Origin: Magallana gigas
Taxonomy: Eukaryota
Length of the DNA stretch: 64,000 nucleotides
Reading direction: 5' to 3'
NCBI RefSeq assembly: GCF_963853765.1
Contig: NC_088860.1
Span: forward strand, 868,001 to 932,000
The first letter of the stretch is position 1, and every line of letters starts with the position of its first letter. The position numbers were made by a program, and so were the translations under genes. This document shows positions 34,394 through 63,326 of the stretch, one piece after another. The notes under the pieces are model-generated. The model saw only the letters and a list, made by a program, of their open reading frames with translations, searched no databases and was not told the origin of the DNA.

Positions 34394-37300
34394 GTAGGTC
34401 CTCTATTGTGGTATTAAATGACTTTTATAAGGACTTTATTGAGGAGCATGACAAGTTTTACCTAGCTTTCAGTTTCTTTGATCTCATGGAATATGACAAG
34501 GCAGCCCTCTCTGTCCAAGACTGTAAGAACAAAAAAACATACTATCTTAACATGTATGGCAGGTACCTGGCTGATGAAAAGAGAAAATTAGACAATGCTC
34601 CGGATTCATTTGGTAAAGTTGTCAGTCAGTTGTTTTGTTAACAGTCATAGACAGTCAATTGATAGATTTTCCCATGTTTCTGTGATTTTATTGAAATTAG
34701 CAGTTTTCTGTCAAAGCTGTATCTAAAATGATACAGGTTATGAACATTAAATGAATGTTCCTTTCTTTCAAGGTCCTCCAGACAAATTAGAGAATGGACA
34801 CCTTAAAACTCTGAAAACAGAACTAGCCAAGAAGTATGCCATCACGGAACTGGATGGATTCTGTATCTATCTGTAAGTTAGTAGCAGTTTCTACTTGTAG
34901 GTAAAAGTATTAAAGGGGCATGGTCACTACTTTTGTCAAATTTTATTTTTCACTTTTTAAGGTAAGGTTTGCAGCTTGCATTTTTTAGGAATAGTACCAA
35001 AGTTATATACCATTTTGTTAAGTGTACTAAAGCCTTTTTTCTTATAAAATTCAAATGATTTTGCCAGACCCATTTTATAGCTACAAAAGGTCAAAGTTCA
35101 TGATTTCAAACTGTCAGGTTGATGAAATGTAAATACTAGTAGTTTTGTGAAAAATGTACGTTTTATATGGAACAAATATGGGTGTTATTTATGCTGAAAA
35201 TGTTCGAAAATAATGTCACTATATTATGATTGATTTGTCGTAATTTCCAATAAACTATTTAAGAAAAAAAGTATGTGTTTTCGTGAATGTTGCAGAATAA
35301 CCTCCGAGGTCGAGAAATGTTTTGAAATATAACAGACGAGACATTGGCCGATGCTTTTATATTTCAAACAACATTTCGAGACCGAGGAACATTCACAATA
35401 ACAAGAACTTTATTTCTGTTCTACTAACAGCCCAGTATTTCTACAGATCATTTCTCCTATGTCAAGGTCCGACATTTTGAGGACTGTTCGGAATCCGTGT
35501 AACCACAACAGTTTTGTTAGTAATGTTACATGTTTATCGATCAAAGGAATCACATGCAGACGACAGAATCTTTCTTTGGATTTTTAATACTCTTCACTTA
35601 TTTGTAAAATATTTGCGAATCACATGCCTAATTTTTATAGGGCAATTATTACTACTTCACGTTATATATTTTATGTAAAAACATGCAGTGAAAATGTGCT
35701 AGGGAGGTCCTAGGAACAGCTGCATTGGTCCCTTAAAAATAAACATTTGAGGCAAAACACATCATTTTGACTGGAATTAACACGTGAAATCGACGCAGTT
35801 TTAAAACTTTTTACGGTTTGAAGTTGTACTCTCATGGTCAGTGCGAGACAAATAGGTATTACTGATCTGATAATTTACTGATGACGTTCATGGTATATTG
35901 GAGAATAATGTCCGCGACATCTCTTTGATCTCGGCAAAAACTTTAGTAGAATAAAAATTAAGTAGAATTATCTTAGTATATGTGCAATCTAGTGTTTCTA
36001 AAACACTATTGAAAACCATATGTTGCGAACTTCATTTTTGTGTAAATCGATAAAATGCATGTTTCTTTTTGATTTTTCAATGTAAACTAGAAACCCCGTG
36101 AAATAAAAAAAACTGAAATCAAATATAATGTCATATAAATTTTTACGTCATATTGGAAATATTAAAGGGTAATTGGTGTTACATCAAAATGAAAATCTGA
36201 GAGTTATCTCCCTGTAAAAATGCTTTAGTAATGCATTTCTAATGTTCAACCAAAATTTGAGTGAGAGTCATTGAGTTATAAGCGAGTTACAGATATCACA
36301 ATTCTTTGTTATGTACAGTTATAAGTAATGATGTGATGATGTAAGTTATTTTTGAAGCTGGTTTTTATATCTGCTGATTCTTTTTTAACATTTTGAACAA
36401 ACATTTCCTCTGTTTGTCGCATTCATTGAAGGTCGAAATCTGGAATTTTTTTTCAGCATTAAGATGTAAACAATGACATTACCTGAGCTTTGTTTACATA
36501 ACAATGAATTGTGGGCTCTGTATCTCGCTTACAACTTAACGACCGACATTCATGTGTTGGTTACTTTTAGAAATGCCTAACAGAATCATTGTAAACATAA
36601 AAAAAACAGGAAAATAAATTTTGCCCCAAACCGTAACCATGCTCCTTTTAATTTGTGAGACAGATCACTCGGTGACAGTTGTCTGAACGTAAGTCAATAT
36701 AAAGTAGCTATCAAAAACAAAATCTTTATAAATTGAAAATGATGATTTTTCTATTAATTCTGTATGGAATTTTATTTTGCAGGTACGGTGTGGTGTTGAA
36801 AAAGCTGGATTTACTGAAAGAAGCTATAGAAGTGTTTGTTGATGCGGTGAACTCTGAACCACTGCACTAGGGGGCGTGGTTAGAACTAGTGACCCTCATC
36901 AAAGACAAAGAGTCTGTGAGTTATCTCCCTTATATTGGTTAGAACTAGTGACGCTCATCAAAGACAAGGAGTCATTGAGTTATCTCCCTTATACTGGTTA
37001 GGACTAGTGACTCACCAAAGACAAGAAGTCAGTGAGTTATCTCCCTTATATTGGTTAGGACCAGTGACACTCATCAAAGACAAGGAGTCTGTGAGTTATC
37101 TCCCTTATATTGGTGTGAACTAGTGACACTCATCAAAAACATGGAGTCTGTGAGTTATCTCCCTTATATTGGTTAGAACAAGTGACCCTCATCAAAGACA
37201 AGGAGTCTGTGAGTTATCTCTCTTTTATTAATAAACTGATTTGATTAGATCTCAATTCCACACAGAAAATAATTTTTTACAATCTTTTAACTAACTACAG

Positions 37301-37737
37301 TAAATTGATTTAAGCAATCTTTAATACATTGATACCATTACTGAATACATGCATAACAAACCGTCAGATGCCTTGATTCTTTTGTAGCTGATATGTTACC
37401 ATCTCTTTTAACTACAGTAGTTTGATTTTAAGCAATCTTAAACACAGTAATACATAAACTGAATTCAATTAACTGAAAATAAATATCTACACAAATTTTA
37501 ACTGCCTTGATACTGTTAAAGCTGCTGGCACTTTCCCTCCCCAATCACTGGATGAAGCATTTCTTTCAGGGTCACATTTACCTGGAACTGCAGTTGAATG
37601 AGGAGGGACTCAAGATTTACCAACACTTGATGGATAAAGGGTTCGTCAAGAGTTCCTACATTGTGTCACAGGTCGCCATGGCTTACAACAACATGAGAGG
37701 TAGGTCCTCTGGTGTACGAGGTGCTTTGATAGACATC

Positions 37738-38466
37738 GGTATTGGTCTTGATTTGTGTCAGGTGATTTAATAGACTTGGTATTGGTCTTGATTTGTGTCA
37801 GGTGATTTAATAGACTCAGTATTGGTCTTGATTTGGTTCAGGTGATTTGATAGGCTGAATGTTGGTCTTGATTTGAGCCAGGTGATTTGATAGGCTGAGT
37901 GTTGGTCTTGATTTGAGCCAGGTGATTTGATATGCTGAATGTTGGTCTTGATTTGTGTCAGGTGATTTAATAGACTCGGTATTGGTCTTGTTTTGTGCCA
38001 GGTGATTTGATAGGCTGAATGTTGATCCGGTATTGGTCTTGATATGTCAGGTGAATTGATAGACTCGGTATTGGCCTTGATTTGGTTCAGGTGATTTGAT
38101 AGGCTGAATGTTGGTCTTGATTTGGTTCAGGTGATTTGATAGGTTGAGTGTTTGTCTTGATTTGGTTCAGGTGATTTGATAGGCTGAATGTTGGTCTTGA
38201 TTTGAGCCAGGTGATTTGATAGGCTGAGTGTTGGTCTTGATTTGGTTCAGGTGATTTGATAGGTTGAGTGTTTGTCTTGATTTGGTTCAGGTGATTTGAT
38301 AGGCTGAATGTTGGTCTTGATTTGAGCCAGGTGATTTGATAGGCTGATTGTTGATCTTGATTTGGTTCAAGTGATTTGATAAACTGAGTATTGTTCTTGA
38401 TTTGGTTCAGGTGATTTGATAGACTCAGTATTGGTCTTGATTTGTGCCAGGTGATTTGATAGGCTG
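37738..38466. repeat. 40-bp minisatellite, about 18 copies (about 2 copies in unit A, about 20 in unit C)
   Basis: Unit GGTATTGGTCTTGATTTGTGTCAGGTGATTTAATAGACTC and variants, between exon 6 and the cGLR 3' end. Confidence 0.9.
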
Positions 38467-38817
38467 AGAGGAGATATAGGCCTAGGGCATTATAATTTGA
38501 TATATATTGTATCTTTAAATTGCAATCAAGGAGAGCACTTTGAGATTTCTAGTAATAAATTAGCAAATCCTTGATATTAAGATTATAAATTATCATAATA
38601 ATTCCAACCCTGGCAGAAAAAAAACTATCCTTTTGTAACAATTTACGGATGAATGCAAAAAATGTACAATTGTACAGTAAGGAGTGTCATTGTGTACGTA
38701 TTTGAATTTTTTTCCTTATATATTACTACAGTAGAACTAATTAAAAAAGTTAGTGTAAATGTTGTTTTTGTTGATGACTTCTCAATCTTGGTCTAATATT
38801 CCACCATACTGGTTTAT

Positions 38818-40988
38818 TTACTGGTGTGGTGTAGACTGAACCATATCATGTATTCTCCTCTGTGTAGCAGTTTGTATTCTGTTCATTGGATGCTGTGTGA
38901 GTGACTGTTGGTATGAGTATAGAGCAGCCTGGAGGTTCCCTGTGATCTGTTGACAGATCCCCAGGATCTCCCAGGAGATGTCTCTGAATAGATCATATAT
39001 ATACATTCCCTGATCATGGTGGACTAGGACCTGTAGCTCATCTACAGCTGCTTGTGATAATGTCATATCAATGTGTCTGTGACACAAGAACTCTAGGAAG
39101 TGTAACATTACAAACACTGGGATACCTAATGTAAGCATTCTGTTCTGTAGTACAGACTGTTGTTCTGGTATTAGTTCACTGATATAACAGATTCTGTTGT
39201 CAAGTCTGATATCCTGTGCTACAGCCTGTCTCATCTTTGTAGACCAGGACTGTCCCCCTACAGCCTCAGTATACCTCTCTCTGTCCACATGTTTATTATA
39301 CATCAGATATGGTTGTGCTAACTTGACCTTTGTCATCTCTATAACAAATAAAGCTTCCCTGTATCTGAGTGTCTTGTAATAATACATGGCAATGTACAAC
39401 ATGTCAGATACACACCCAAACTTGGCTGCTAATTTCAGCATGTGACAGGACAGTTTGTCTGCAATATACATCTGTTTGTTGACACATATGTTGTGCAATG
39501 TAAAGGCAGTAATCTGAAATATGAAGGCTGTAAGTCTCTGTAATGTAACAGCTTGATAGTGTGTCAGGGGTGACTCTACCAACTGTTCTATTATGTGTAT
39601 GTATTTGTTAGGGCTATTTGTCCTACTTGCAGCAATGTAAGAGGACTCATTAACAAGTTCTACATCATAATCAACTTCACTCCTCATTAATCTCTCATTT
39701 GTGCAAATAAAAAGTCTAGGATTGTACAGGACATTAATGATGAAGGACCTGATAGAGGAACTCTGTAACAGACAGGCCAGACCTTTCTTGTACAGTTCAT
39801 GTAACTGTAGGAACAATCTGTTTTGTGCTGATCCATAGACCTTTGTCAGAAACAGGTTGTTTAGTGGGATGAAAAAGTTCGGACAAACTCCCTCAGACAC
39901 CCATTTAAGTAGGAGTTTAAAGCAGACCCAGAAACCGGCCAGGAGATTTTGTGGACACCAGTGAGGTAGTGTGTTTTGTTGAATCGCCCAGAAAACGGTT
40001 GTCTTCATGTGATAGGAACACAACAGTTTATTGGTTTCTTCTAACTGATAATTTATTACTTCCTTTAGGAAAAGTTTTAACAACCCATATGTTAAAAATT
40101 GACTGTGGTTCATTGAATACACAAGTTTATATTCTGCCAGAGAAAAAGAAATTCTCCACGCTATGTTTTCATTTGGTCCTAATGGGTGTCCTATTGCTAC
40201 AAAATGACACCCATTTCTGACAATATCATGAACAACTTCAGGATCAGGCCATGAGTGACATCTATCTATCCATGAGGAGGCAGACAGAGGCCAAAAGTCA
40301 CAAACAAAACAGTGGGCATGGTCATATTCTAATCCCCCCATATTACCACTACCACAGGGTCCATGGACAGTAGAATTAGGCATTGTTGCTGAACAAGTTA
40401 ACTGTCTCCATATAGAACTAGATATATAGACTCTGCCATTCATTCTGACACATGCTGATTGGACTTCTCTGTATGTCGTTGGTGTCAGTAACTGAAGTAA
40501 AGTGAATCCTGGTGGACTCTCAGAACTATCAGAGAGAATCAAGGTTGTATTGGCTGTGTTGTAATACTCAGACTGAGACATGTCCATGATCACTCGGTGG
40601 TCGTTTGGCCAGAACATGATGTCCCTATCTGATCCCTTCAGTCTAAATCCTTCTCTAATACTTCCACTCACCATCTTAATGACCTCATCATTAGGTGCCA
40701 CTTGTCTCCTCACCATCTCCCTGATGTCCACTGTCTCCCTCCTGATAGCCACCTGTTGTGAGGTCCCCACTATCTCACACAGTCCCACAAACACTGACTC
40801 TGACATGTTCTGGAGTCCCTCATATCTATATTATTGTTATTTTTGGAAATATATACTTCTATCATTTTTATTCTTAATCAATTATTCCATTAACAAAATT
40901 GAAAACATTATTATAGTTTATATAATAATAAAAAGAGGATACTGATGAATGTATGATGTACTTACGTTTCGTGAGGAAAGGACTCCAT
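38818..40988 (-). CDS. cGAS-like receptor (cGLR), copy B, apparently chimeric
   Basis: 662-aa ORF 38818..40806 with [18 protein letters not shown] and LEYD. Same 23-bp first exon complement(40966..40988), acceptor with exon 2 starting at 40825. Confidence 0.92.
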
Positions 40989-43330
40989 ATTAATTATAAG
41001 GAAGTCAAACAACTGTGGAAATATTTTTTTCTTTTTTTAAGTGCTGGGGTTTTTTTTGGGGGGGGGGGGGTGTACTTTCATTTTGTGTCATTTTCCTCTT
41101 AAGTCTTATATCTTAAAGATCAATAATTTTTATAAACATGGTCCTCAAGTATAAACTCTTTAAAATACTGTGTGTTTGCCTTGTTTAAAGTTTAATTACA
41201 TAGATGGGAATATTTTTTGTACAAACTTCTGGGAAAAAAAGCAGACCAAAAAAAATTTGCTAGCAAGTAGATTTTTTAAAAAAAAAAATTACGATTAAAA
41301 CGGATTGAAAATATTTTTAGTCAGGTTCTTTTTGGCACAAAGGCAATTAAGTTATTTTTACTGTGCAAATTTTTGAATTGATTGATCAATGCAGTTATAA
41401 TATTTGTACTGAAAAAGAAATAATATCAACAGAAAAAGATTAATTTATGCCATGGAAAGAACTAAGTTTTATTCGTTTAGAATGTAATTAATTTGGATGT
41501 TTACCCTTTATAATTTTTTTTCTGTATGATATGATTGTGACAGCCATTTTCTGTAAAATTGACCAGGAGGAAAACTCCCATTAAAAGAAAATATTAATAG
41601 TATATTTATAGAGTTTAAAGATATTCACTGTACAACACAATTTAGACATTTTTGTATTGTGCAATAACAATACAATGTAGTTAATTTAGTGAAGGTAGTG
41701 AGCTATTTTAGCATCACAAAATTATACTCTGTCCAGAGTTTTTGCTTCCACCACTTTTCGCTTGATATTTCGATAATAATAAATACCTTTGTGCCCAAAC
41801 TACATTCATCCACTAATATCAAAAATGTCCAGATTATCTGTTTTGAAACGCCCCCTCTACCACTTCAGGTTTCAATACACATTCCAAAATAGAAAGTCTA
41901 CGGAGATTTTGCATTGCATCTGCCATTTATAAGCCCGGATGATAACGTTTAAAAATTGCGCGAGGTGTCCCAAGTACTTCCGCTGGTTTATTATCCCCTC
42001 GCACAACAAAAAGATGTAAACATTTCCCATTTTAAATCTCCATAAGAATTTTGTTTTTGTTCCTAAAAACTTTTATGAGTAAAATTGAATAATTTGTCAA
42101 TGAAGATATCATGAATATTTACCTTTTCATCAATTTCAACTGTACTTCTTTCACAGGTAATTGTATTTTTATTAAAAATCATCAAAAAATGATGGAAGCA
42201 ATAACTTGGGACAGACTTTAATTAATTTCCATCAAGTCAGCGATATTGCTCCAAAAGTTATTCCCCTTGGACTCAATTTCAAAAATTTCAACTATTTGCA
42301 GATTCCATTCATTTTCTTCAATAAAATCTTTAAGGGAGGGAGGCATAAGTGTTTCACAAACATCTCTTGTAATCAGTACACTTTCCTTCAAGTCTGCAAT
42401 ATTGCTCCTGGGCCTCACGTAAGGGGTTGGTTAGGATGGAAGAAGGAATAACTTGAGAAGTCCTTTGTGTATTTCTAATTAGTTGTTAACAAATTTAAGT
42501 GGATATTAAACAATGCATTTTCAAATATACCTGTAATAATTACCTGTAGTGTTTTATGTATTTTCACCTTTGTTTGTTGACAGAGGTAGATATGGCAGTC
42601 AACGCCTTCACTGAGCTGACAGAGATGGACCCCTACAGACTGGAGAATATGGACTACTTCTCCAATACTCTCTACATCAAGGTCAGAAGATGCCAAGTCT
42701 TGTCCATCAGATTAACCCTTTTTGATTATCAAGTGTTGAAGATCTTTGTAATTTTTTTTTCTAGGAAATGCGGGCTGATTTAGCTCACCTGGCTCACAGG
42801 TGTTGTGACATTGACAAATACAGAGAGGAGACCTGTGTAGTTATAGGTAAAGCCTGCTACATGAGCATTCAATGTTATTTAAAGAGATTGGTTATATTCA
42901 AGGACTCATTTTAAGATATTTTATTTGAACATAAGTGTCAGTTTTCACATTATGATAGATTCTAAAGCCATTGCTCGGTGGCATATGACTATGAGAGTTA
43001 TTTAGAGTTATTAAGTACCTAGACCCATTCTGTCTAAAATATAAATAGGAACATGCATATCTGCATCTTAAAATATAAAGCAATGATGTCTTCTTACTTT
43101 TAGAATCTGCCCTCGGGGATTAGCTATATACTGCTTAGCTGTCAGCTCTTGGCATTTTTTTATGAAAGGAGTTTTCTATATCAGGTAATTACTACTCTCT
43201 GCGGCAGCAGCATGAGAAGGCAGTGCTGTATTTCCAGAGAGCCCTGAAGCTGAACCCCCAGTACCTGTCCGCCTGGACTCTGATGGGGCACGAGTTCATG
43301 GAGCTGAAGAATACGACAGCCGCCATTCAA

Positions 43331-45660
43331 GCCTACAGACAAGCTATAGGTTAGTGAGGCCTTAAGACAGGCTATAGGTTAGTGAGGTTTACAGACAGGC
43401 TATGGGTTAGTGAGGTCTACAGACAGGCTATAGGTTAGTGAGGTCTACAGAGAGGCTATGGGTTAGTGAGGTCTACAGACAGGCTATAGGTTAGTGAGGT
43501 CTACAGACAGGCTATGGGTAAGTGAGGTCTACAGACAGGCTATAGGTGAGTGAGGTTTACAGACAGGCATGGGTTAGTTAGGTCTACAGACAGGCTATAG
43601 GTTAGTGAGGTCTACAGACAGGCTATAGGTTAGTGAGGTCTACAGACAGGCTATGGGTAAGTGAGGTCTACAGACAGGATATAGGTGAGTGAGGTCTACA
43701 GACAGGCTATAGGTGAGTGAGGTCTACAGACAGGCTATAGGTTAGTGAAGTATACAAACAGGCTATGGGTTAGTGAGGTCTACAGACAGGCTATAGGTTA
43801 GTGAGGCCTACAGACAGGCTATAGGTTAGTTAGGTGTACAGACAGGCTATGGGTTAATTAGGTCAACAGACAGGCTATAAGTTAGTGAGGTCTACAGACA
43901 GGCTATGGGTTAGTGAGGTCTACAGACAGGCTATTGGTTAGTGAGGTCTACACACAGGCTATTGGTTAGTGAGGTCCTCAGACAGGCTATAGGTTAGTGA
44001 GGTCTACAGACAGGCTATAGGTTAGTGAAGTCTACAGACAGGCTATTGGTTAGTGAGGTCTACAGACAAGCTATAGGTTAGTGAGGACTACAGACAGGCT
44101 AAAGGTTAGTGAGGTCTACAGACAGGCTATAGGTTAGTGAGGTCTACAGACAGGCTATAGGTAAGTGAGGTCTACAGACAGGCTATAGGTGAGTGAGGTC
44201 TACAGACAGGCTATATGTTAGTGAAGTATACAGACAGGCTATGGGTTAGTGAGGTCTACACACAGGCTATAGGTTAGTGAAATCTACAGACAGGCTATAG
44301 GTTAGTGAGGTCTACAGACAGGCTTGGGTTAGTGAGGTCTACAGACAAGCTATAGGTTAGTGAGGTCTACAGACAGGCTACAGGTTAGTGAGGTCTAGAG
44401 ACAGGCTATGGGTTAGTTAGGTCTACAGACAGGCTATAGGTTAGTGAAGTATACAGAAAGGCTATTGGTTAGTGAGGCCTACAGACAGGCAATAGGTTAG
44501 TGAAGTCTACAGACAGGCTATAGGTTAATGAGGTCTACAGACGGGATATGGGTTAGTGAGGTCTACAGACAGGCTATAGGTTAGTGAGGTATACAGACAG
44601 GCTATAGGTTAGTGAGGTTTACAGACAGGCTATAGGTTAGTGAGGTCTACAGACAGGCTATAGGTGAGTGAGGTCTACAGACAGGCTATAGGTTAGTGAA
44701 GTCTACAGACAGGCTATAGGTTAGTGAAGTATACAGACAGGCTATGGGTTAGTGAGGTCTACAGACAGGCTATAGGTTAGTGAGGCCTACAGACAGGCTA
44801 TAGGTTAGTTAGGTGTACAGACAGGCTATGGGTTAGTGAGGTCTACTGACAGGCTATGGGTTAGTTAGGTCTACAGACAGGCTATAAGTTAGTGAGGTCT
44901 ACAGACAGGCTATGGGTTAGTGAGGTCTACAGACAGCCTTTTGGTTAGTGAGGTCTACACACAGGCTATTGGTTAGTGAGGTCCTCAGACAGGCTATAGG
45001 TTAGTGAGGTCTACAGACAGGCTATAGGTTAGTGAAGTCTACAGACAGGTTATTGGTTAGTGAGGTCTACAGACAGGCTATTGGTTAGTGAGGTCTACAG
45101 ACAAGCTGTATGTTAGTGAGGTCTACAGACAGGCTATAGGTTAGTGAGGTCTACAGACAGGCTATAGGTAAGTGAGGTCTACAGACAGGCTATAGGTGAG
45201 TGAGGTCTACAGACAGGCTATTGGTTAGTGAGGTATACAGACAGGCTATGGGTTATTGAGGTCTACAGACAGGCTATAGGTTAGTGAAATCTACAGACAG
45301 ACTATAGGTTAGTGAGGTCTACACACAGGCTATAGGTTAGTGAGGTATACAGACAGGCTATGGTTTATTGAGGTCTACAGACAGGCTATAGGTTAGTGAA
45401 ATCTACAGACAGGCTATAGGTTAGTGAGGTCTACAGACAGGCTTGGGTTAGTGAGGTCTACAGACAAGCTATAGGTTAGAGAGGTCTACAGACAGGCTAC
45501 AGGTTAGTGAGGTCTACAGACAGGCTATAGGTAAGTGAAGTCTCGTACAGGCTGTAGGTTAGTGAAGTATACAGATAGGCTATTGGTTAGTGAGATCTAC
45601 AGACAGGCTATCGGTTAGTGAGGTGTACAGACAGGCTATAGGTTAGTGAGGTCTTCAGAC
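43331..45660 (+). repeat. 28-bp exon 9/donor minisatellite expanded to about 83 copies in unit B
   Basis: Same unit as 27050-27660. Confidence 0.93.
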
Positions 45661-48600
45661 ATACTTTTAGGTAAGTAACATGCCTATTGACAGGATAAAT
45701 GTTAATGAGGTTTACAAACAGGCTTTAAGTTTGTTTACGATTTTTAGGTAATAGGATAGGAAGGATAAGTTATCAGATAGGTAGACAATAGGGATGAATT
45801 GGTTTTCAATCAGGCAAGTTGCAATCTTAATTTAAAAACTCAATGCAATAGGCAACACTCATATTTCTTTTTTGGCCTCTCATTAGAGTAATGAGAGCAT
45901 TAGATAGAAAAAATCAATCCTAAAGCACGGATTTAGGCTACCACTATACATATACTTTTTTTCAGAAATCAACATACGAGATTACCGAGCCTGGTATGGT
46001 CTGGGACAGACGTATGAGATCCTTAAAATGCCATTCTATTGTTTATATTACTACAGACAGGCCCAGAAATTAAGGTAGTTGTTTAAATCTTATGATGTTG
46101 TTCTATTGTTTGTATTACTACAGACAGGCCGAGAAATTAAGGTAGATGTTTAAATCTTATGATGCTGTTCTATTGTTTGTATAACTACAGACAGGCCAAA
46201 AAGTTAAGGTTACCATAGATACTTGATTCTAAAAATGTAGATCTGATATATATTATTGTAACCGAATATATTTCCACAAGTAAGGAGGCTTGATAGTTAA
46301 AAAACACATTTACCTTAAAATTTCAATTATTTAGATAAAAAATATAAATATTTTGGTTTTGAAATCAGGGCATTATGTTATTGCAGAGCTTTTAGTCTTA
46401 AGGATATCAATAAAGTCAAAATAGTTGATGTAAATTTGGACTCAAAGTCTTGGAGCAATAAAATACTGTATGAATTATTTTGACATGTAAAAGACATCTT
46501 TTAAAACATCTGTAAGTTTTTGTTCTACAACATACAACATACTTCAAATATACAGATTAAGTTGATTGTAATTTTCAAATTCAATTTTATTCTGACAAAA
46601 ATAAGTGATCAAAATCACTTAAGGTCTTGCACTTCTTACAGTTCTTGCAGTTCTTACACATCTCCAGTTCTAAAGCAGTAGTACGTGGATTTTATTATGA
46701 TTGTTAAGACCTCATTCCCTCGTTTTCTGATTGGTTTTCTTAGGCCAAACGACTCAAGAATGGCCATGGCACTTGGGGAATCTTATGAGAAACTAGAACG
46801 ACTGCAGGAGGCCAAGAAATGCTTCTGGAAGGCCCATGTAGTGGGAGATATGGAAGGAATGGCCCTGATTAAACTCGCAAAGTAAGACACAAGGTCTATT
46901 TAGAATTGGTTTTAATATGTTAAGGGTCTATTAAGATAATGTACAGTGTCTAGTTATCTGTTACGTGAGGTTTTATTGACACATTATAATGTACATTTAC
47001 TGTCTGTTTCAGCTTACATAAAGTCTTTTGACACAGTAAATGTACAGTTACTGTTTGTTTCAGGTTACACCAGGTCTATTGACACAGTAAAATGTACAGT
47101 AACTATCTGTTTCAGGTTACACGAGGTCTATTGACACAGTAAAATGTACAGTAACTATCTGTTTCAGGTTACACGAGGTCTATTGACACAGTAAAATGTA
47201 CAGTAACTATCTGTTTCAGGTTACACGAGGTCTATTGACACAGTAAAATGTACAGTAACTATCTGTTTCAGGTTACACGAGGTCTATTGACACAGTAAAA
47301 TGTACAGTAATTATCTGTTTCAGGTTACACAAGGTCTATTGACACAGTAAAATGTACAGTAACTATCTGTTTCAGGTTACACGAGGTCTGTTGACACAGT
47401 ATAATGTACAGTAACTATCTGTTTTAGGTTACACGAGGTCTGTTGACACAGTATAATGTACAGTAACTATCTGTTTGAGGTTACACAAGGTTTATAGACA
47501 CAGCATAGTGTACAGTAACTTTCCTTTTGGTTATATAAATTCTATTGACACAGTATAACATACAGTAATTTTCTGTTTCAGGTTACATGAGCGCCTAAAT
47601 GAGGAGGACCAAGCAGCCTCAGCATACACCGAGTACATCAACGAGGCCAACAGAATGGGGGTCAGTAGATCACAGCAAGATCAAAGGTCACATTTGTGTG
47701 AAGTGTTTGTGATGTTGACCTACATTTTGTACAGTTAGATTTGTTCAAACTGTGTTCCTAACAGAGACTGATATTTTGCCACATTATAAAAAACACATAT
47801 AGAGATATGAGGTTATATAGATCTGACATATTACACGAAACTGGAATGGTATATATATATATCTCTTACATCGTATGTAGGTTTGACATATTATATGATC
47901 TGTTTTAAAGGTATAACATGTTATTTATATGGTTCTGATAATTGAAATACAGATCTATCATGTTAAAAATAAATATGAGTTCTATAGATCTTATATGTTA
48001 TTTAGGTATGTTAGATAGGGTTATTATATAGATCTGTTATATAGACACACTGTTAATTTACAGACCTTTAATGCTGAGTATGAGCATCAAGTTTACAAGT
48101 ACTTAACTACTATATACTGTAGATAGGACATGTTATATAGACATGTTATATAATTATGCATGTTACATAGATATGTTGTATATAGACCCACTGATTTTTT
48201 ACAGACGTTCAGTGCAGAGGATCAGAGTCAAGCCTACAAGTACCTGGCTAACTATCACCTGTTGAGGAACAACCTAGATGATGCTTACGCTGCCGCCCAG
48301 AAGTGTACAGAGTTCCCCGAGGTTAGAGTCCGAGTTTGTCTCATTACACCGCATCATTGGAAATTCTCATTGATTTTAATTCTGTCTAATTACATCTTAT
48401 TCATTTGATAATCCCAAAACACTTTCATATCGAATTATCTAGACATTCCTAATCAACATCCTCCAGTTCTTATTTTTTCTCTAGATACTTTAGTATTCTG
48501 TAATGCTATAATATACAGTGTTATTTATGCTATCGATATTTACTTATCCAATTGACCAAAGTAAAGATTAGGCTCTCTTTTGACATAAATTTACAATTAG

Positions 48601-50689
48601 ATGAATTTAGTGAATGAATGAATACAAAGAGAGAAGATTACCCTGTTTTATAGTAGCAGTTTGTACTAGTCTAGTAAAAGTATATCTTCCCAATTGTTCC
48701 ATTATACTAATATATTGATATTTGTAATTTACACTATTACATGTGTATTTACAGAGGAGAGAGGAGGCCAAGGGAATCCTTAAAGATATCCAGAACAGGC
48801 GGGCCAGGAGTGAGGGGGCGTACCCCCACCCAGTCAGGATGGATGACAGCCTGGGCTCCATCTGTCCCGACCCCCTCAACATCAGCACCAGGACCCCCTC
48901 CGTGTGTCTCTCCCCCGTCAATCTCAAGTTTGATATCGGCGACGACTGACCAGGAACTATTTTACAGTGTGTTCATAGACTGACTGACAACAAGCTTTTT
49001 GCCATTGTGATGAATTGGTCATCTATTGTGTTTGTGTAGTCCTGATAAGATTCAGTTGGGTTACCTAGCTCACATGATGGTTCATTGTAATCAACCAGAC
49101 AAGAACTGTGCAATCTTCTCACAGTATGTACTGACCCTGTAGTTTATTATGACACCAGAGGTCTGTTCAGCAGAGTTAACACTGTAACTATTGTGTTATA
49201 GAAAGAGGGAAATACGGGGAGTTGTGCTAACCTGGCCTCAGTTGTGATTTGATTTATAAATTGTTTCAATAAAATGGTTGAATGTTTCGATAAAACAGCC
49301 CATTCTTGTCACAGATGGTTATTGACTTCATGGAATCTTACAGTATCAACTAATAAATGCTATGTGGTCCTTATTGTTGTATAAATTTTTCTCTCGACTA
49401 TCTTAGTTTCTTGTATTTTCGTACACAACTAAAATCACTGGGTTTATTTTGGAATTATTTTGAACTTAATTCACATGCACACTTGTTATAGCTATTCATC
49501 TAATTTTAAGAAAAAGACCTCCCCAAATAAATCTACGATATAAACTTAGTTACCACCATGATTGTATGACCTGTGCTTTAATTCTTTGATGGTCATTTTG
49601 AATTTGAAAATACTGTAATATCTCTATATTTTGTGTGCCATACATTTGCACCCTAAAAAGTAGGGTGGCTCCATAACTAATAAAAAGATTAATGATTTTG
49701 TATTATGTAGATCAGTCTTTTTACATGAAATACTAGTAGTCTGTTAGACATTTTTGTATTATCTGATATAAGAAAAGAAAACATAAGAGACATATTTTGA
49801 AGACATTACACAGCGTACATGTTGCTAGTCTCAATCTTATATAATAATTACTTCCCTGTAGAAGTGTTATCTTCCTTAATTTCTTGTGTGTGGTATAAAA
49901 TAAGCATTTAAAAGTGACGAGACTTCTCAGAATACTACTGCATTTAGATGAAGTGTCAGGGAAGGATACACAGGATGTCCCTCCTAGGCTCTTTTTTGGT
50001 TAAAGTTATAATGTAACAGCTGTATATAAAATAGTTAATATGGGGATAATGTGTGGAATAAATATATAAGCAAGAGAATATTAAACTATGAACACACTTC
50101 GGTAATTCATGCGCCATGTGCACAAATATAAACATCTCCACGTGTTTTGAGTATATTTATTTTTGTAAGATTAAATAAAATCGTTCAATCTTACATAACC
50201 AATTTGACATGTACTTTTGAAAAACAATCATTAATATATTTACATTTTCAACTGTCGTTGTCTGTGATAACATTACAAATCAATTTTGAACTCTAAAACC
50301 CTATCCTATCTAATAACTACTTCACTTTTGAAGTGTTCTAGCTCTTCCTTAATTTCTTGTGTGTGATATATAATAAGCATTTAAAAGTGACTAGACTTCT
50401 CAGAATACTGCTGTATTTAAATGAAGTGTCAGGGAAGGATACACAGGATGTTCCGCCTAGGTTCTATATTGGTTACAGTCATAATGTAACACACCTGTAT
50501 ATAAGATAGTAAACATGGGGATAGAATGAAATCGATACATAACCTAGAAAATATTAAAATATAAAACAGTTCCAATACTGTTTCAACAATAGACGTTTGT
50601 GAAGTTTTGAAATGCACTTACATAGTTACAGGAAAACTTGCTAATTCAGTGGATCAAAGTTGGACATAATTTCTTGGGCAAGAACTAGT

Positions 50690-51059
50690 AACTCATTAAA
50701 GACAAAGAGTTAATGAGTTACCTCCTTTTTAATAAAAATGTAGATTTTTATTCCATAATTTATTACATAATCTTTTAAATATAGTAACTGTTATTTGATT
50801 TGAAACAATCTTTAATACATTATTTGATACGATAACTGAACAATTTAAACTAATTTTATCAAATATCTGTTCTACTGTTTTAGCTGCTTGCAATTTCCCT
50901 CGCCAATCATTGGATGAAACATTTCTTTCTGGGTGACATTTACCTTGTACTGCAGTTGAATGAGGAGGGACTCAAGATTTACCAACACCTGATACATAGG
51001 GATTGTCAAGAGTTCCTTCATTGTGTCATAGGTTGCCATGGCTGACAACAACATGAGAG
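50690..51059 (+). pseudogene. CDC23: Second orphan exon 5-end / exon 6 fragment fused to exon 3 of unit C
   Basis: Exon-6 homologue 50884..51059 (176 bp), same 38-bp junction to exon 3 as at 34394-34431. Confidence 0.83.
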
Positions 51060-54000
51060 GTAGGTCCTCTGTTGTGGTATTAAATGACTTTTATATGGAC
51101 TTTATTGAGGAGCATGACAAGTTTTATCTAGCTTTCAGTTTCTTTGATCTCATGGAATATGACAAGGCAGCCCTCTCTGTCCAAGACTGTAAGAACAAAA
51201 AAACATACTATCTTCACATGTATGGCAGGTACCTGGCTGATGAAAAGAGAAAATTAGACAATGCTCCGGATTCATTTGGTTAAGTTGTCAGTCAGTTGTT
51301 TTGTTAACAGTCATAGACAGTCAATTGATAGATTTTCCCATGTTTCTGTGATTTTATTGAAATTAGCAGTTTTCTGTCAAAGCTGTATCTAAAATGATAC
51401 AGGTTATGAACATTAAATGAATGTTCCTTTCTTTCAAGGTCCTCCAGACAAATTAGAGAATGGACACCTTAAAACTCTGAAAACAGAACTAGCCAAGAAG
51501 TATGCCATCACGGAACTGGATGGATTCTGTATCTATCTGTAAGTTAGTAGCAGTTTCTACTTGTAGGTAAAAGTATTAAAGGGGCATGGTCACTACTTTT
51601 GTCAAATTTTATTTTTCACTTTTTAAGGTAAGGTTTGCAGCTTGCATTTTTTAGGAATAGTACCAAAGTTATATACCATTTTGTTAAGTGTACTAAAGCC
51701 TTTTTTCTTATAAAATTCAAATGATTTTGCCGGACCCATTTTATAGCTACAAAAGGTCAAAGTTCATGATTTCAAACTGTCAGGTTGATGAAATGTAAAT
51801 ACTACCGGTAGTAGTTTTGTGAAAAATGTACGTTTTATATGGAACAAATATGGGTGTTATTTATGCTGAAAATGTTCGAAAATAATGTCACTATATTATG
51901 ATTGATTTGTCGTAATTTCCAATAAACTATTTAAGAAAAAAAGTATGTGTTTTCGTGAATGTTGCAGAATAACCTCCGAGGTCGAGAAATGTTTTGAAAT
52001 ATAACAGACGAGACATTGGCCGATGCTTTTATATTTCAAACAACATTTCGAGACCGAGGAACATTCACAATAACAAGAACTTTATTTCTGTTCTACTAAC
52101 AGCCCAGTATTTCTACAGATCATTTCTCCTATGTCAAGGTCCGACATTTTGAGGACTGTTCGGAATCCGTGTAACCACAACAGTTTTGTTAGTAATGTTA
52201 CATGTTTATCGATCAAAGGAATCACATGCAGACGACAGAATCTTTCTTTGGATTTTTAATACTCTTCACTTATTTGTAAAATATTTGCGAATCACATGCC
52301 TAATTTTTATAGGGCAATTATTACTACTTCACGTTATATATTTTATGTAAAAACATGCAGTGAAAATGTGCTAGGGAGGTCCTAGGAACAGCTGCATTGG
52401 TCCCTTAAAAATAAACATTTGAGGCAAAACACATCATTTTGACTGGAATTAACACGTGAAATCGACGCAGTTTTAAAACTTTTTACGGTTTGAAGTTGTA
52501 CTCTCATGGTCAGTGCGAGACAAATAGGTATTACTGATCTGATAATTTACTGATGACGTTCATGGTATATTGGAGAATAATGTCCGCGACATCTCTTTGA
52601 TCTCGGCAAAAACTTTAGTAGAATAAAAATTAAGTAGAATTATCTTAGTATATGTGCAATCTAGTGTTTCTAAAACACTATTGAAAACCATATGTTGCGA
52701 ACTTCATTTTTGTGTAAATCGATAAAATGCATGTTTCTTTTTGATTTTTCAATGTAAACTAGAAACCCCGTGAAATAAAAAAAACTGAAATCAAATATAA
52801 TGTCATATAAATTTTTACGTCATATTGGAAATATTAAAGGGTAATTGGTGTTACATCAAAATGAAAATCTGAGAGTTATCTCCCTGTAAAAATGCTTTAG
52901 TAATGCATTTCTAATGTTCAACCAAAATTTGAGTGAGAGTCATTGAGTTATAAGCGAGTTACAGATATCACAATTCTTTGTTATGTACAGTTATAAGTAA
53001 TGATGTGATGATGTAAGTTATTTTTGAAGCTGGTTTTTATATCTGCTGATTCTTTTTTAACATTTTGAACAAACATTTCCTCTGTTTGTCGCATTCATTG
53101 AAGGTCGAAATCTGGAATTTTTTTTCAGCATTAAGATGTAAACAATGACATTACCTGAGCTTTGTTTACATAACAATGAATTGTGGGCTCTGTATCTCGC
53201 TTACAACTTAACGACCGACATTCATGTGTTGGTTACTTTTAGAAATGCCTAACAGAATCATTGTAAACATAAAAAAAACAGGAAAATAAATTTTGCCCCA
53301 AACCGTAACCATGCTCCTTTTAATTTGTGAGACAGATCACTCGGTGACAGTTGTCTGAACGTAAGTCAATATAAAGTAGCTATCAAAAACAAAATCTTTA
53401 TAAATTGAAAATGATGATTTTTCTATTAATTCTGTATGGAATTTTATTTTGCAGGTACGGTGTGGTGTTGAAAAAGCTGGATTTACTGAAAGAAGCTATA
53501 GAAGTGTTTGTTGATGCGGTGAACTCTGAACCACTGCACTAGGGGGCGTGGTTAGAACTAGTGACCCTCATCAAAGACAAAGAGTCTGTGAGTTATCTCC
53601 CTTATATTGGTTAGAACTAGTGACGCTCATCAAAGACAAGGAGTCATTGAGTTATCTCCCTTATACTGGTTAGGACTAGTGACTCACCAAAGACAAGAAG
53701 TCAGTGAGTTATCTCCCTTATATTGGTTAGGACCAGTGACACTCATCAAAGACAAGGAGTCTGTGAGTTATCTCCCTTATATTGGTGTGAACTAGTGACA
53801 CTCATCAAAAACATGGAGTCTGTGAGTTATCTCCCTTATATTGGTTAGAACAAGTGACCCTCATCAAAGACAAGGAGTCTGTGAGTTATCTCTCTTTTAT
53901 TAATAAACTGATTTGATTAGATCTCAATTCCACACAGAAAATAATTTTTTACAATCTTTTAACTAACTACAGTAAATTGATTTAAGCAATCTTTAATACA

Positions 54001-54409
54001 TTGATACCATTACTGAATACATGCATAACAAACCGTCAGATGCCTTGATTCTTTTGTAGCTGATATGTTACCATCTCTTTTAACTACAGTAGTTTGATTT
54101 TAAGCAATCTTAAACACAGTAATACATAAACTGAATTCAATTAACTGAAAATAAATATCTACACAAATTTTAACTGCCTTGATACTGTTAAAGCTGCTGG
54201 CACTTTCCCTCCCCAATCACTGGATGAAGCATTTCTTCCTGGGTCACATTTACCTAGAACTGCAGTTGAATGAGGAGGGACTCAAGATTTACCAACACCT
54301 GATGGATAAAGGGTTCGTCAAGAGTTCCTTCATTGTGTCACAGGTCGCCATGGCTTACAACAACATGAGAGGTAGGTCCTCTGGTGTACGAGGTGCTTTG
54401 ATAGACATC

Positions 54410-55218
54410 GGTATTGGTCTTGATTTGTGTCAGGTGATTTAATAGACTTGGTATTGGTCTTGATTTGTGTCAGGTGATTTAATAGACTCAGTATTGGTCT
54501 TGATTTGGTTCAGGTGATTTGATAGGCTGAATGTTGGTCTTGATTTGAGCCAGGTGATTTGATAGGCTGAGTGTTGGTCTTGATTTGAGCCAGGTGATTT
54601 GATATGCTGAATGTTGGTCTTGATTTGTGTCAGGTGATTTAATAGACTCGGTATTGGTCTTGTTTTGTGCCAGGTGATTTGATAGGCTGAATGTTGATCC
54701 GGTATTGGTCTTGATATGTCAGGTGAATTGATAGACTCGGTATTGGCCTTGATTTGGTTCAGGTGATTTGATAGGCTGAATGTTGGTCTTGATTTGGTTC
54801 AGGTGATTTGATAGGTTGAGTGTTTGTCTTGATTTGGTTCAGGTGATTTGATAGGCTGAATGTTGGTCTTGATTTGAGCCAGGTGATTTGATAGGCTGAG
54901 TGTTGGTCTTGATTTGGTTCAGGTGATTTGATAGGTTGAGTGTTTGTCTTGATTTGGTTCAGGTGATTTGATAGGCTGAATGTTGGTCTTGATTTGAGCC
55001 AGGTGATTTGATAGGCTGAGTGTTGGTCTTGATTTGAGCCAGGTGATTTGATAGGCTGAGTGTTGGTCTTGATTTGAGCCAGGTGATTTGATAGGCTGAT
55101 TGTTGGTCTTGATTTGGTTCAGGTGATTTGATAAACTGAGTATTGTTCTTGATTTGGTTCAGGTGATTTGATAGACTCAGTATTGGTCTTGATTTGTGCC
55201 AGGTGATTTGATAGGCTG
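54410..55218. repeat. 40-bp minisatellite, about 20 copies
   Basis: Homologue of 37738-38466 with nearly the same order of unit variants. Confidence 0.9.
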
Positions 55219-55566
55219 AGAGGAGATATAGGCCTAGGGCATTATAATTTGATATATATTGTATCTTTAAATTGCAATCAAGGAGAGCACTTTGAGATTT
55301 CTAGTAATAAATTAGCAAATCCTTGATATTAAGATTATGAATTATCATAATAATTCCAACACTGGCAGAAAAAAAAAACTATCCTTTTGTAACAATTTAC
55401 GGATGAATGCAAAAAATGTACAATTGTAAGGAGTGTCATTGTGTACGTATTTGAATTTTTTTCCTTATATATTACTACAGTAGAACTAATTAAAAAAGTT
55501 AGTGTAAATGTTGTTTTTGTTGATGACTTCTCAATCTTGGTCTAATATTCCACCATACTGGTTTAT

Positions 55567-57740
55567 TTACTGGTGTGGTGTAGACTGAACCATATCATGT
55601 ATTCTCCTCTGTGTAGCAGTTTGTATTCTGTTCATTGGATGCTGTGTGAGTGACTGTTGGTATGAGTATAGAGCAGCCTGGAGGTTCCCTGTGATCTGTT
55701 GACAGATCCCCAGGATCTCCCAGGAGATGTCTCTGGATAGATCATATATATACATTCCCTGATCATGGTGGACTAGGACCTGTAGCTCATCTACAGCTGC
55801 TTGTGATAATGTCATATCAATGTGTCTGTGACACAAGAACTCTAGGAAGTGTAACATTACAAACACTGGGATATCTAATGTATACTCTCTGTTCTGTAGA
55901 GCAGACTGTTGTTCTGGTATTAGTTCACTGATATAACAGATTGTGTTGTCAAGTCTGATATCCTGTGCTACAGCCTGTCTCATCTTTGTAGACCAGGACT
56001 GTCCCCCTACAGCCTCAGTATACCTCTCTCTGTCTACATATCTATAATACATCAGATATGGCTGTGCTAACTTGACCTTTGTCATCTCTATAACAAATAA
56101 AGCTTCCCTGCATCTGAATGTCTTGTAATAATACATGGCAATGTACAACATGTCAGATACACACCCAAACTTGGCTGCTAATTTCAGCATGTGACATGAC
56201 AGTTTGTCTGCAATATACATCTGTTTGTTGACACATATGTTGTGCAATGTAAAGGCAGTAATCTGAAATATGAAGGCTGTAAGTCTCTGTAATATAACAG
56301 CTTGATAGTGTGTCAGGGGTGACTCTACCAACTGTTCTATTATGTGTATGTATTTGTTATGGCTATTTGTACTACTTTCAGCAATGTAAGAGGTCGCTTT
56401 AACAAGTTCTACATCATAATCAACTTCACTCCTCATTAATCTTTCATCTGTACAAATAGAAAGTCTAGGATTGTACAGGACATTAATGATGTAGGACCTG
56501 ATAGAGGAACTCTGTAACAGACAGGCCAGACCTTTCTTGTACAGTTCATGTAACTGTAGGAACAATCTGTTTTGTGCTGATCCATAGACCTTTGTCAGAA
56601 ACAGGTTGTTTTGTGGGATGAAAAAGTTCGGACAAACTCCCTCAGACACCCATTTAAGTAGGAGTTTAAAGCAGACCCAGAAACCGGCCAGGAGATTTTG
56701 TGGATGCCAGTGAGGTAGTGTGTTTTGTTGAATGGCCCAGAAAACGGTTGTCTTCATGTGATAGGAACACAACAGTTTATTGGTTTCTTCTAACTGATGA
56801 TTTATGACTTCCTTTAGGAAAAGTTTTAACAACCCATATGTTAAAAATTGACTGTGGTTCATTGAATACACAAGTTTATATTCTGCCCGAGAAAAAGAAA
56901 TTCTCCACTCTAGGTTTTCATTTGGTCCTAATGGGTGTCCTATTGCTACAAAGTGACACCCATTTCTGACAATATCATGAACAACTTCAGGATCAGGCCA
57001 TGAGTGACATCTGTCTATCCATAAAGAGGCAGATGGAGGCCAAAAGTCACAAACAAAACAGTGGGCAGTGTCATATTCTAATCCCCCATAATTACCACTA
57101 CCACAGGGTCCATGTACGGTAGAATTAGGAATTAATGCCGAACAAGTTAACTGTCTGTATATTGAACTAGATATATAGACTCTGCCATTCATTCTGACAC
57201 ATGCTGACTGGACGTATCTGTTTATTCGTGGTGTCAGTAACTGAAGTAAAGTGAATCCTGGTGGACTCTCAGAACTGTCAGAGAGAATCAAGGTTGTACT
57301 GGCTGTGTTGTAATACTCAGACTGAGACATGTCCATGATCACTCGGTAGTTGTTATACCATAACATAAAGTCCACATCTGATCCATTCAGTCTAAATCCT
57401 TCTCTGTGACTTCCACTAATCATCTTAATGAGCCCATCATACGATATCACTTGTCTCCTCACCATCTCCCAGATGTCCTCTGTCTCCCTCCTCAGGGCCA
57501 CCTGTTGTGAGGTTCCAACTATCTCACACAGTCCCACAATCACCGACTCAGACATGTGCTGGAGTCCTTCATATCTATATTATTATTATTTTGAAATATA
57601 TACTTTTATCATTTTATTCTTAATCAATTATTTCATGAACAAAATTGAAAACTTTATTATAGTATATACATGTATAATAATAAAAAGAGGATACTGATAA
57701 ATGTATGATGTACTTACGTTTCGTGAGGAAAGGACTCCAT
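55567..57740 (-). CDS. cGAS-like receptor (cGLR), copy C
   Basis: 662-aa ORF 55567..57555 with SGSHREGFRLNGSDVDFM and LEYD. First exon complement(57718..57740), exon 2 starting at 57574 ([18 protein letters not shown]...). Confidence 0.92.
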
Positions 57741-61868: not shown

Positions 61869-62059
61869 AATATACATTAATTTCATATAAAACTGTAGAG
61901 ATATATGTCAGCTTTAGGACAAATATATTCTGCTATTATGGTACATGCAATCTATCCTTCACAAAAAGACAACTAACTCAACCAATTATCTTAGTAAGAC
62001 AACCGGACTGACATTCATAAATTATTCATACAGCCCACTAGCTGTCATCTATTCTGATT

Positions 62060-63098
62060 CATTGATCGGTGTACCACTTACTTACCACTATTTCATTGAT
62101 CTGTCTACCACTTATTTACCACTATTTCATTGATCGGTGTACCATTTACTTTCCACTTTCATTGATCAGTGTACCATTTACTTACCACTACATGTATTTC
62201 ATTGATTGGTCTACCATTTACTTACCATTATTTCATTGATTGTTCAACATTTACTTACCACTATTTCATTGATCGGTGTACCATTTACTTACCACTATTT
62301 CATTGATCGGTGTACCATTGACTTACCAATATTTCATTGATCGGTGTACCATTGACTTACCAATATTTCATTGATCGGTGTACCATTGACTTACCACTAT
62401 TTCATTGATCGGTGTACCATTGACTTTCCACTTTTTCATTGATCGGTCTACCATTTACCTACCACTTTTTCATTGATCGGTGTACCATTTACCTACCACT
62501 ATTTCATTGATCGGTGTACCATTGACTTACCACTATTTCATTGATCGGTGTACCATTTACTTTCCACTTTTTCATTGATCGGTCTACCATTTACTTTCCA
62601 CTTTTTCACTGATCGGTCTACCATTTACTTTCCACTATTTCATTGATCGGTGTACCATTGACTTACCAATACTTCATTGATCGGTGTACCATTTACTTTC
62701 CACTATTTCATTGATCAGTGTACCATTTACTTACCAATATTTCACTGATCGGTGTACCATTTACTTACCACTATTTCATTGATCAGTGTACCATTGACTT
62801 ACCAATACTTCATTGATCGGTGTACCATTTACTTTCCACTATTTCATTGATCGGTGTACCATTGACTTACCAATATTTCACTGATCGGTGTACCATTTAC
62901 TTTCCACTATTTCATTGATCAGTGTACCATTTACTTACCAATATTTCACTGATCGGTCTACCATTTACTTACCACTATTTCATTGATCAGTGTACCATTT
63001 ACTTACCAATATTTCATTGATCAGTGTACCATTGACTTACCACTATTTCATTGACCGGTGTACCATTTACTTTCCACTATTTCATTGAACAGTGTACC
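62060..63098. repeat. 34-bp minisatellite, about 30 copies
   Basis: Unit TTCATTGATCGGTGTACCATTTACTTACCACTAT; many units contain ACTTACC (GGTAAGT on the minus strand). Confidence 0.92.
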
Positions 63099-63326
63099 TT
63101 TATCTCTTTATACTTCAAACAGACTTAGCCTAGTACCACGTTAACTTACAACTTTTCCACTGACTTAATTAACCTTTTTAACTTACAACTTTTCCACTGA
63201 CTTAATTAACCTTTTTAACTTACAACTTTTCCCCTGACTGAGACAAACATTTTAATTTACTCTTCTCTAACAAACACATATAGTGCAATACTACGAACAA
63301 CCAATTTGAATTAGTTATAAATGTGA

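Follow-up and report, generated by a model that had tools for sequence, protein, structure and literature searches.

cGLR-B of Magallana gigas is a hybrid receptor gene, A-type in its enzyme half and C-type in its tail half

How a receptor gene can resemble one of its neighbours in one half and its other neighbour in the other half is the question raised by a tandem array of the oyster Magallana gigas. The stretch analysed here, referred to as the window, comprised 64,000 nucleotides (assembly GCF_963853765.1, contig NC_088860.1, positions 868,001 to 932,000), and all coordinates below are positions within it. It contained three intact minus-strand open reading frames (ORFs) of the Mab21/MB21D2-like type in tandem, the cGAS-like receptors (cGLRs) cGLR-A, cGLR-B and cGLR-C, of 665, 662 and 662 amino acids, with spacings between successive ORFs of 18.9 kb (A to B) and 16.7 kb (B to C). 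Each receptor gene lay antisense within an intron of a plus-strand copy of CDC23/APC8 (ANAPC8), between the exons designated e_d and e_f. It was confirmed that cGLR-B is a genuine hybrid, with an enzyme half of A type and a tail half of C type.

19916-21913, minus strand: cGLR-A ORF, the parent type of the 5' half of cGLR-B, nested in an intact CDC23 copy
38818-40825, minus strand: main coding exon of cGLR-B, made up of the ORF at 38818-40806 and 19 coding bases upstream of an internal ATG
55567-57555, minus strand: cGLR-C ORF, the parent type of the 3' half of cGLR-B, nested in a truncated CDC23 copy

Mosaic structure of cGLR-B and its flanks

The initial annotation, made from the letters of this stretch alone, had described cGLR-B as a chimera. 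In the protein alignment, all of the landmarks it had listed as common to B and C were found, namely NNLFLTKVYGSAQ, IINVLY, an NICV segment shorter by four residues and nearly the entire C-terminal part; the peptides it had quoted as A-like in the N-terminal part were likewise all present, and were common to B and A. Over the ORF and its near flanks, 124 sites grouped A with B against C, 131 grouped B with C against A, and 35 grouped A with C against B. The first two classes were strongly segregated from each other, with a maximum chi-square of 99.1 as compared with a permutation maximum of 25.6 (the observed value was reached in 0 of 10,000 permutations). In trees built with 23 full-length outgroup paralogs, positions 1-851 of the coding sequence (CDS) joined A with B at 99% ultrafast bootstrap, and CDS 952-1986 joined B with C at 100%; A, B and C together were monophyletic in both half-trees. 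Two outcomes had been named beforehand as refuting a chimera, the same topology in both halves and the lack of a significant breakpoint. Both were tested, and neither was seen.

The switch was not confined to a few residues, as it took in synonymous sites, a 12-bp indel, kilobases of non-coding flank and a nonsense codon of the host gene. This bears directly on the idea that no exchange took place and that the pattern reflects chance or parallel selection at a few residues. It is true that the same few states recur across alleles at the hypervariable positions, which is the kind of behaviour such an explanation draws on, but the explanation is already refuted by the flanks, and given the extent of the switch and the permutation result it is hardly credible.

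The initial annotation had predicted the switch at 39857-39955, and lineage-diagnostic sites did put it between 39855 and 39956. The raw maximum of the chi-square scan was located elsewhere, at 39626/39629. However, the 'A-like' sites in 39629-39710 were mostly private to this C allele, and the 'A' state was present in five of five C. angulata genes; therefore the interval 39857-39955, and not the raw peak, was taken as the best estimate of the junction.

39856-39955, unstranded: best-estimate recombination junction, coinciding with the unit's longest perfect A=C run (100 bp); outer bounds at 39626-40139
34615-39855, unstranded: C-type tract of unit B; contains the 3' portion of the receptor gene, in addition to a 40-bp satellite and CDC23 pseudo-exons
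39956-43995, unstranded: A-type tract of unit B; contains the 5' portion of the receptor gene as well as CDC23 exons e_f to e_h

All of the four perfect A=C runs of greatest length (100, 99, 95 and 81 bp) were located within 39736-40138, and a junction in the longest of such runs is as expected of a homology-dependent exchange. In the protein, the switch fell at residues ~284-318, near the end of Mab-21_C (~residue 331), so that 'catalytic core from A, C-terminal domain from C' is a fair summary. The earlier claim that an A-lineage catalytic domain had been joined to a C-lineage C-terminal domain holds to this extent, but the 'lineages' themselves were found to be blurred, the array being a patchwork with several hybrid junctions.

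As for the flanks, their described likeness to C on the left and to A on the right was borne out by the measured divergence. Over 34615-38987, the left flank of B differed from that of C by ~0.3% (99.7-100% identity), and within the C-type tract this low divergence persisted to 38987, with ~3.8% inside the ORF. The right flank of B differed from that of A by ~2.4% over 40731-41650 and by ~0.4% over 41650-43389. The identity of the A-type tract to A was 97-99.6%, with the exception of a patch at 40313-40731 (91%), which is described below.

The CDC23 host gene

The antisense nesting of the receptors was seen through C. angulata gene models, and the CDC23 exons of the window were mapped by translation and tblastn. 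Units A and B had twelve mapped exons each, e_a to e_m. The tandem unit was the whole CDC23/APC8 gene together with its nested receptor, and the three units spanned 11065-31874, 34366-48946 and 51032-59211 on the plus strand. The CDC23 gene of unit A looked intact, that of unit B consisted of a dead 5' half and a clean 3' half, and that of unit C was truncated. Exons 9-13, which the initial annotation had noted in A and B and found lacking in C, were identified as the last five CDC23 exons, at 27953-31874 in A and 45965-48946 in B. Unit C ended after e_g, the seventh mapped exon, and a 75% relic of e_l was found at 59152-59211.

36868-36870, plus strand: nonsense codon TAG in exon e_c of the CDC23 copy of unit B; the same change is present in C (53541), and A has TGG (15577)
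43996-50425, plus strand: S2 of unit B, comprising the 28-bp satellite and exons e_i to e_m of CDC23 (45965-48946)

The e_a exon of the B/C type differed from that of A in 22% of residues. Because of this B/C-type e_a and the TAG in e_c, the 5' CDC23 half of unit B was assigned to a dead C-type copy. On the 3' side, exons e_f to e_h of B were the same as those of A at every nucleotide, and exons e_i to e_m showed 11 differences from A in 630 coding nucleotides, of which all 11 were synonymous and none was a replacement, in surroundings of introns that were ~10% apart; at the protein level, all eight of the exons 6-13 to the right of B were identical to their counterparts in A. A 3' half joined to a dead 5' half should decay, and this one has not, which argues that it was part of a working CDC23 gene for almost the whole time since it split from that of A. 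The synonymous-only exon differences suggest, moreover, that it was under purifying selection until recently.

Several repeats were observed in and beside the host gene. A 59-bp satellite (15585-16425, 18246-18952, 36877-37229 and 53549-53901) was a tandem copy of the 3' end of e_c with its GTGAGT donor, and the functional CDC23 gene therefore has many repeated candidate donor sites in this intron. A 28-bp satellite in the intron after e_h occupied 27052-27718 in unit A (~24 copies) and 43333-45661 in unit B (83 copies); it was long in C. angulata too, where it ended scaffold 78. A 2.6-kb stretch at 22760-25359, containing 176-bp and 98-bp tandem repeats, was present in unit A and in the C. 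angulata ortholog and absent from B and C. Units B and C each had an incomplete additional copy of e_d immediately upstream of e_a (34200-34410 and 50866-51076), which may be the scar of the first duplication junction. To the right of unit C, the region 59150-59723 was a 65% identical relic of the e_l region, and this relic suggests a far greater age for the array than would be deduced from how alike its homogenised parts are.

Origin of the hybrid and exchange within the array

The hybrid was probably made by a single unequal (non-allelic homologous) crossover between diverged haplotypes. We infer a single crossover rather than long conversion, and likewise the identity of the parental haplotypes and any change in receptor function. 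In such an event, the C-type unit at the end of one chromosome's array would have paired with the A-type unit that opens the array of a deeply diverged homologue, and the exchange would have been resolved inside the receptor ORF, within the ~400-bp stretch of greatest A-C likeness. If one parental chromosome carried A, S1 and C1 and the other A2, S2 and C, where S1 is the counterpart of S2 in unit A, a crossover of C1 with A2 within the ORF would yield A, S1, the C1/A2 hybrid, S2 and C, which is the order in the window. On its left side, the product would hold the decayed C-type CDC23 exons with the TAG codon, the left flank and the helical C-terminal half of the receptor; on its right side, it would hold the A-type nucleotidyltransferase core followed by CDC23 exons 6-13 in working order. 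The event would have added one unit to the array, and three receptor units with two full inter-unit segments are the count that an unequal crossover predicts. Three of the marks expected of a crossover were found, namely a significant breakpoint with discordant trees, flanks that switch parent with the gene, and a junction at the highest parental identity.

The inter-unit segment was colinear and present twice, and the divergence between its copies was ~0.3% at one end, 0.4-3% at the other end and ~10% in the middle. S2 was ~90% identical to its unit A counterpart S1 (27719-33756), with exon differences that were synonymous only. Because the copies were only ~90% alike midway, the parents are best regarded as deeply diverged haplotypes. 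The mispairing of C with A on two A-C chromosomes, as first proposed, is thus supported with respect to the unequal crossover, but two equal chromosomes could not have been the parents. S1 and S2 would then be alleles of one functional CDC23 gene on the two diverged haplotypes, by which the uneven age of the segments could be reconciled with a single crossover. The ~10% mid-spacer divergence was also considered as evidence against a single crossover; this was dropped, as the spacer is the CDC23 3' half and its exons differ at synonymous sites only.

A different history can be written for the same segment: in an old three-unit array, an ordinary middle unit B might have been overwritten by long conversion tracts or repeated exchanges (concerted evolution), with C-type sequence on the left and A-type sequence on the right. 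The identity of the duplicated segment is indeed heterogeneous and graded at its outer ends (over 33757-34615 it rises from 93% to 100%), the 65% late-exon relic to the right of C points to an ancient array, short-tract shuffling is pervasive among alleles and paralogs, and flanks are 99-100% identical across units and two species where coding patches are diverse. But two independent tracts would have to abut within ~100-500 bp in the ORF, and the left one would be ~5.2 kb long and the right one at least 4 kb (~9 kb if the clean S2 exons are included). Gene conversion is expected to move tracts usually under ~1-2 kb and to leave copy number and flanks unchanged, whereas the two tracts of the main mosaic include the flanks; conversion tracts of this size far exceed the usual lengths in meiosis. 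In addition, an old middle unit on a dead CDC23 5' half should have decayed in exons 9-13, in which 0 replacement as against 11 synonymous differences were counted. An origin by long conversion is therefore considered unlikely. Short-tract interlocus gene conversion, by comparison, fits the small patches at 40336-40344, 40645-40648 and 40703-40710.

These patches belong to a second layer of the mosaic, in which short-tract exchange among alleles and paralogs would shuffle small hypervariable cassettes; such exchange would explain both the C-like patches of B and its apparently private residues. One patch of the gene was hypervariable.

40313-40731, minus strand: hypervariable coding patch in the N-terminal part (codons ~25-165); the residue between the two catalytic Asp lies within it

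Within this patch, A and B differed at 36 of 419 bp (8.6%; 91% identity), as compared with 0.4-2.4% in the adjacent flank. Nonsynonymous (dN) and synonymous (dS) divergence between A and B were both raised, with a dS of 0.12 as against ~0.5-2% in the flanks, a pattern that suggests the import of segments and not fresh mutation. As a cause of the hypervariability, positive selection on new mutations was considered and rejected, since dS was raised too and the variants recurred in other alleles. In the C-terminal half, dN/dS of A versus B or C was ~1.3-2.1. At codon 61, between the catalytic Asp (40620-40626 in B), A has Leu, B has Arg and C has Val; among 50 relatives, V, L or I predominated.

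Many of these states recurred in other alleles. On the C. angulata scaffold JANFPH010000078.1, the right flank, S2 and left flank behind an A-type gene, P0005, were 99-100% identical to the B-C segment of the window, and the first 36 A/C-diagnostic sites of B, C-like patches included, were the same as those of P0005. Other patches of B matched P0003 (NMGGLEYDHAH, IPLNN and CTNERL) and P0011 (MLTL), the latter a gene of another C. gigas assembly. The C-like patches in the N-terminal half reported by the initial annotation were real, at the three positions given above, and both they and the changes it had regarded as private are inherited allelic segments. On the C. angulata scaffold JANFPH010000012.1, a full-length CDC23 model of 588 amino acids used S2-type 3' exons behind an A-type receptor gene, which lends indirect support to S1 and S2 having been alleles of diverged parental haplotypes. 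The second gene of the C. angulata array, P0002, had the same build as B, C-type on the left and A-type on the right, with its switch between CDS 976 and 1295; P0008 was A-type through the middle and C-type only from ~CDS 1500; and in the P0005 unit the left flank was C-type at its start and then A-type. At least three distinct junctions of the C-left/A-right kind were counted, in B, P0002 and P0008. From these mosaics and the recurring 'private' residues, it appears that B is one product of a generally recombining array.

Two side observations concern the number of units. Between P0002 and P0003 on JANFPH010000012.1 (319206-353182 of the record), two CDC23-like models of 376 amino acids and a 39-kb gap were present, suggesting a fourth unit with a broken or absent receptor gene, and hence a unit number that varies between haplotypes. 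At G000:C6:1883510-1926691, three paralogs with identical scores and a spacing of 20.6 kb were found, which suggests that another array of this family was triplicated very recently.

Several observations weigh against the single crossover proposed here. The copies of the duplicated segment are unevenly alike, which a crossover between two similar chromosomes cannot yield. The N-terminal half of B is a fine mosaic of segments from different alleles, which means more than one exchange. If the truncated CDC23 gene of unit B, represented in C. angulata by a model of 376 amino acids, works, selection could keep its exons clean, and the argument for recency would be weakened. The initial annotation had predicted an ancestral two-unit (A-C) haplotype and a reciprocal one-unit haplotype; neither was found on the two C. 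angulata scaffolds checked, each of which holds at least three units. Among public sequencing runs, the best held 0.59 of the sampled words of B, as compared with 0.56 already contained in A and C; as ~0.56 of the words are common property in this way, the runs neither show nor exclude B. In the reads of four other oysters on B (at 99% likeness, ~2-3x), the B-specific bins were empty, at a depth too thin for estimating frequency or phasing the junction.

The reads also enter into the question of whether the hybrid is an assembly artefact, in which two two-unit haplotypes of one animal were threaded in series with a switch in the conserved middle of the ORF. The exact word set of B was contained in no indexed run and its exact allele in none of the four read sets, and the differences between the segment copies resemble allelic ones in oysters, in that divergence is patchy, the satellite has 24 copies in one and 83 in the other, and a 2.6-kb indel separates them. 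Reads of oyster X21 matched B over 39628-39903 except at 39863. An exact-protein look-up of cGLR-B found no record, and the same was true of P0011 and P0007, genes of the other C. gigas assembly. Against a mis-join, the sequence shared at the junction is only ~100 bp when perfect and ~400 bp when near-perfect, which is not long enough to be mistaken for an overlap between long reads; one would rather expect a mis-join in the 4-kb identical left flank, where it would leave no hybrid ORF. The independent C. angulata assembly has the same architecture at its second-position gene, the window has no N gaps, and the locus was found once in the 564-Mb assembly. An artefact is thus regarded as very unlikely.

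Beyond the crossover that probably formed B, we tentatively raise the possibility that the locus is a combinatorial diversity generator for cGAS-like receptors, working through recurrent intragenic unequal crossovers and shared old cassettes. Nucleotidyltransferase cores, variants of the active-site loop and C-terminal helical domains would then be reshuffled between copies, using old hypervariable cassettes common to C. gigas and C. angulata, and selection would keep the coding patches diverse and the flanks nearly identical.

Receptor family and biological meaning

Gene structure accounts for the lengths of the annotated products. Position 40988, given as the end of the feature in the initial annotation, was found to be the start codon of a short first coding exon of cGLR-B.

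40966-40988, minus strand: first coding exon of cGLR-B (MESFPHET, 23 nt), separated from the main exon by a ~140-nt intron whose donor is GTAAGT

Because this 23-nt exon and the ~140-nt intron precede the ORF, the annotated cGLR products, at 676-679 amino acids (676 for cGLR-B, P0001), are longer than the ORFs. The subfamily has at least 68 loci in the Magallana gigas genome, and relatives carry the older database name 'C3orf59-like', which corresponds to MB21D2. Further satellites, with periods of 44, 40 and 34 bp, were seen around the array at 1-1989, 9357-10959 and 62058-63102.

A, B and C all passed the Pfam gathering cut-off, which is 24.1 for both families, with 38.5-40.6 bits for PF03281 (Mab-21) and 45.8-49.5 bits for PF20266 (Mab-21_C). 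Sequence matches to solved chains were found for 8gjy (cGAS-like receptor 1, E of 1.5e-11), 7lt1 (human MB21D2, E of 8.6e-9), 8gjw (Cv-cGLR1 of C. virginica according to the title of the record, E of 9.6e-5) and cGAS chains (E of about 1.5e-4); in the matches to solved cGLRs, the aligned part was residues 160-330 only. Like 7lt1, 8gjy and 8gjw, the oyster proteins combine Mab-21 nucleotidyltransferase and helix-bundle domains with a GS motif, D-x-D and a third Asp. G48, S49, D60 and D62 were invariant in 50 of 50 relatives and D162, which aligned with the YD of MB21D2, was conserved in 49 of 50. The oyster proteins differ from these structures in an inexact fit to the published active-site pattern and in an extra C-terminal half of ~320 residues, all-helical, with faint TPR-like signals. 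The first active-site criterion of Li et al. 2023 (PMC9980059) is h[QT]GS X8-20 [DE]h[DE]h X50-90 h[DE]h; this strict pattern was not matched, as Ser stood in place of Q/T, the spacer was 97 residues long and a polar residue followed the third Asp, with Arg between the Asp residues in B. A structure model built with 50 close relatives was poor (mean pLDDT, the predicted local distance difference test, of 50.7, and below 50 in the core). With this poor model, Foldseek against the PDB gave no match at E ≤ 0.001, and cGAS, MB21D2 and Cv-cGLR1 appeared at E of 0.03-0.05. An Atlas feature search with the C-terminal half matched unnamed mollusc clusters only. On the side of sequence, the fold-family evidence for membership in the Mab-21/cGLR superfamily is good.

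In the parts of PMC9980059 consulted, 168 cGLRs were listed for C. gigas and >200 in C. virginica, and the genes described here resemble this bivalve radiation in forming a very large family with tandem arrays. Those parts deal with cGLR numbers and biochemistry and not with recombination between copies. The accessions tried for this subfamily were not found in a search of its supplement. In the literature searched, no description was found of such a hybrid-forming event in this gene family.

Elsewhere, unequal crossover in tandem arrays is well known to produce hybrid genes, with haemoglobin Lepore and anti-Lepore, the red-green opsin hybrids, KIR genes and plant NLR clusters as examples. As in these systems, misaligned direct-repeat paralogs would have exchanged within the coding region with a change in copy number of plus or minus one; the downstream copy contributes the left part with the left flank, and the upstream copy the right part with the right flank; and the junction lies in the best-conserved stretch. 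Unlike them, cGLR-B is a cGAS-like receptor lying antisense in an intron of a co-duplicated essential cell-cycle gene, its parents were seemingly ~10% apart in introns, and the parental and reciprocal haplotypes were not observed. It is thus a known, textbook kind of event in a gene family that is new to it, an example rather than a new principle.

Unequal crossing-over is a familiar route to new immune-gene variants. Bivalves have hundreds of cGAS-like receptor genes, the origin of whose diversity is largely undescribed, and this locus provides a concrete and testable case of domain reshuffling. Since the receptor is nested in the essential CDC23 gene, the decay of host exons offers a rare internal clock for such events. 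Since B is a natural swap of the catalytic core versus the C-terminal domain, A, B and C lend themselves to asking which of the two halves governs ligand specificity and which governs product specificity. If the tentative view of the locus as a diversity generator is true, oyster cGLR arrays would be an animal counterpart of plant NLR clusters.

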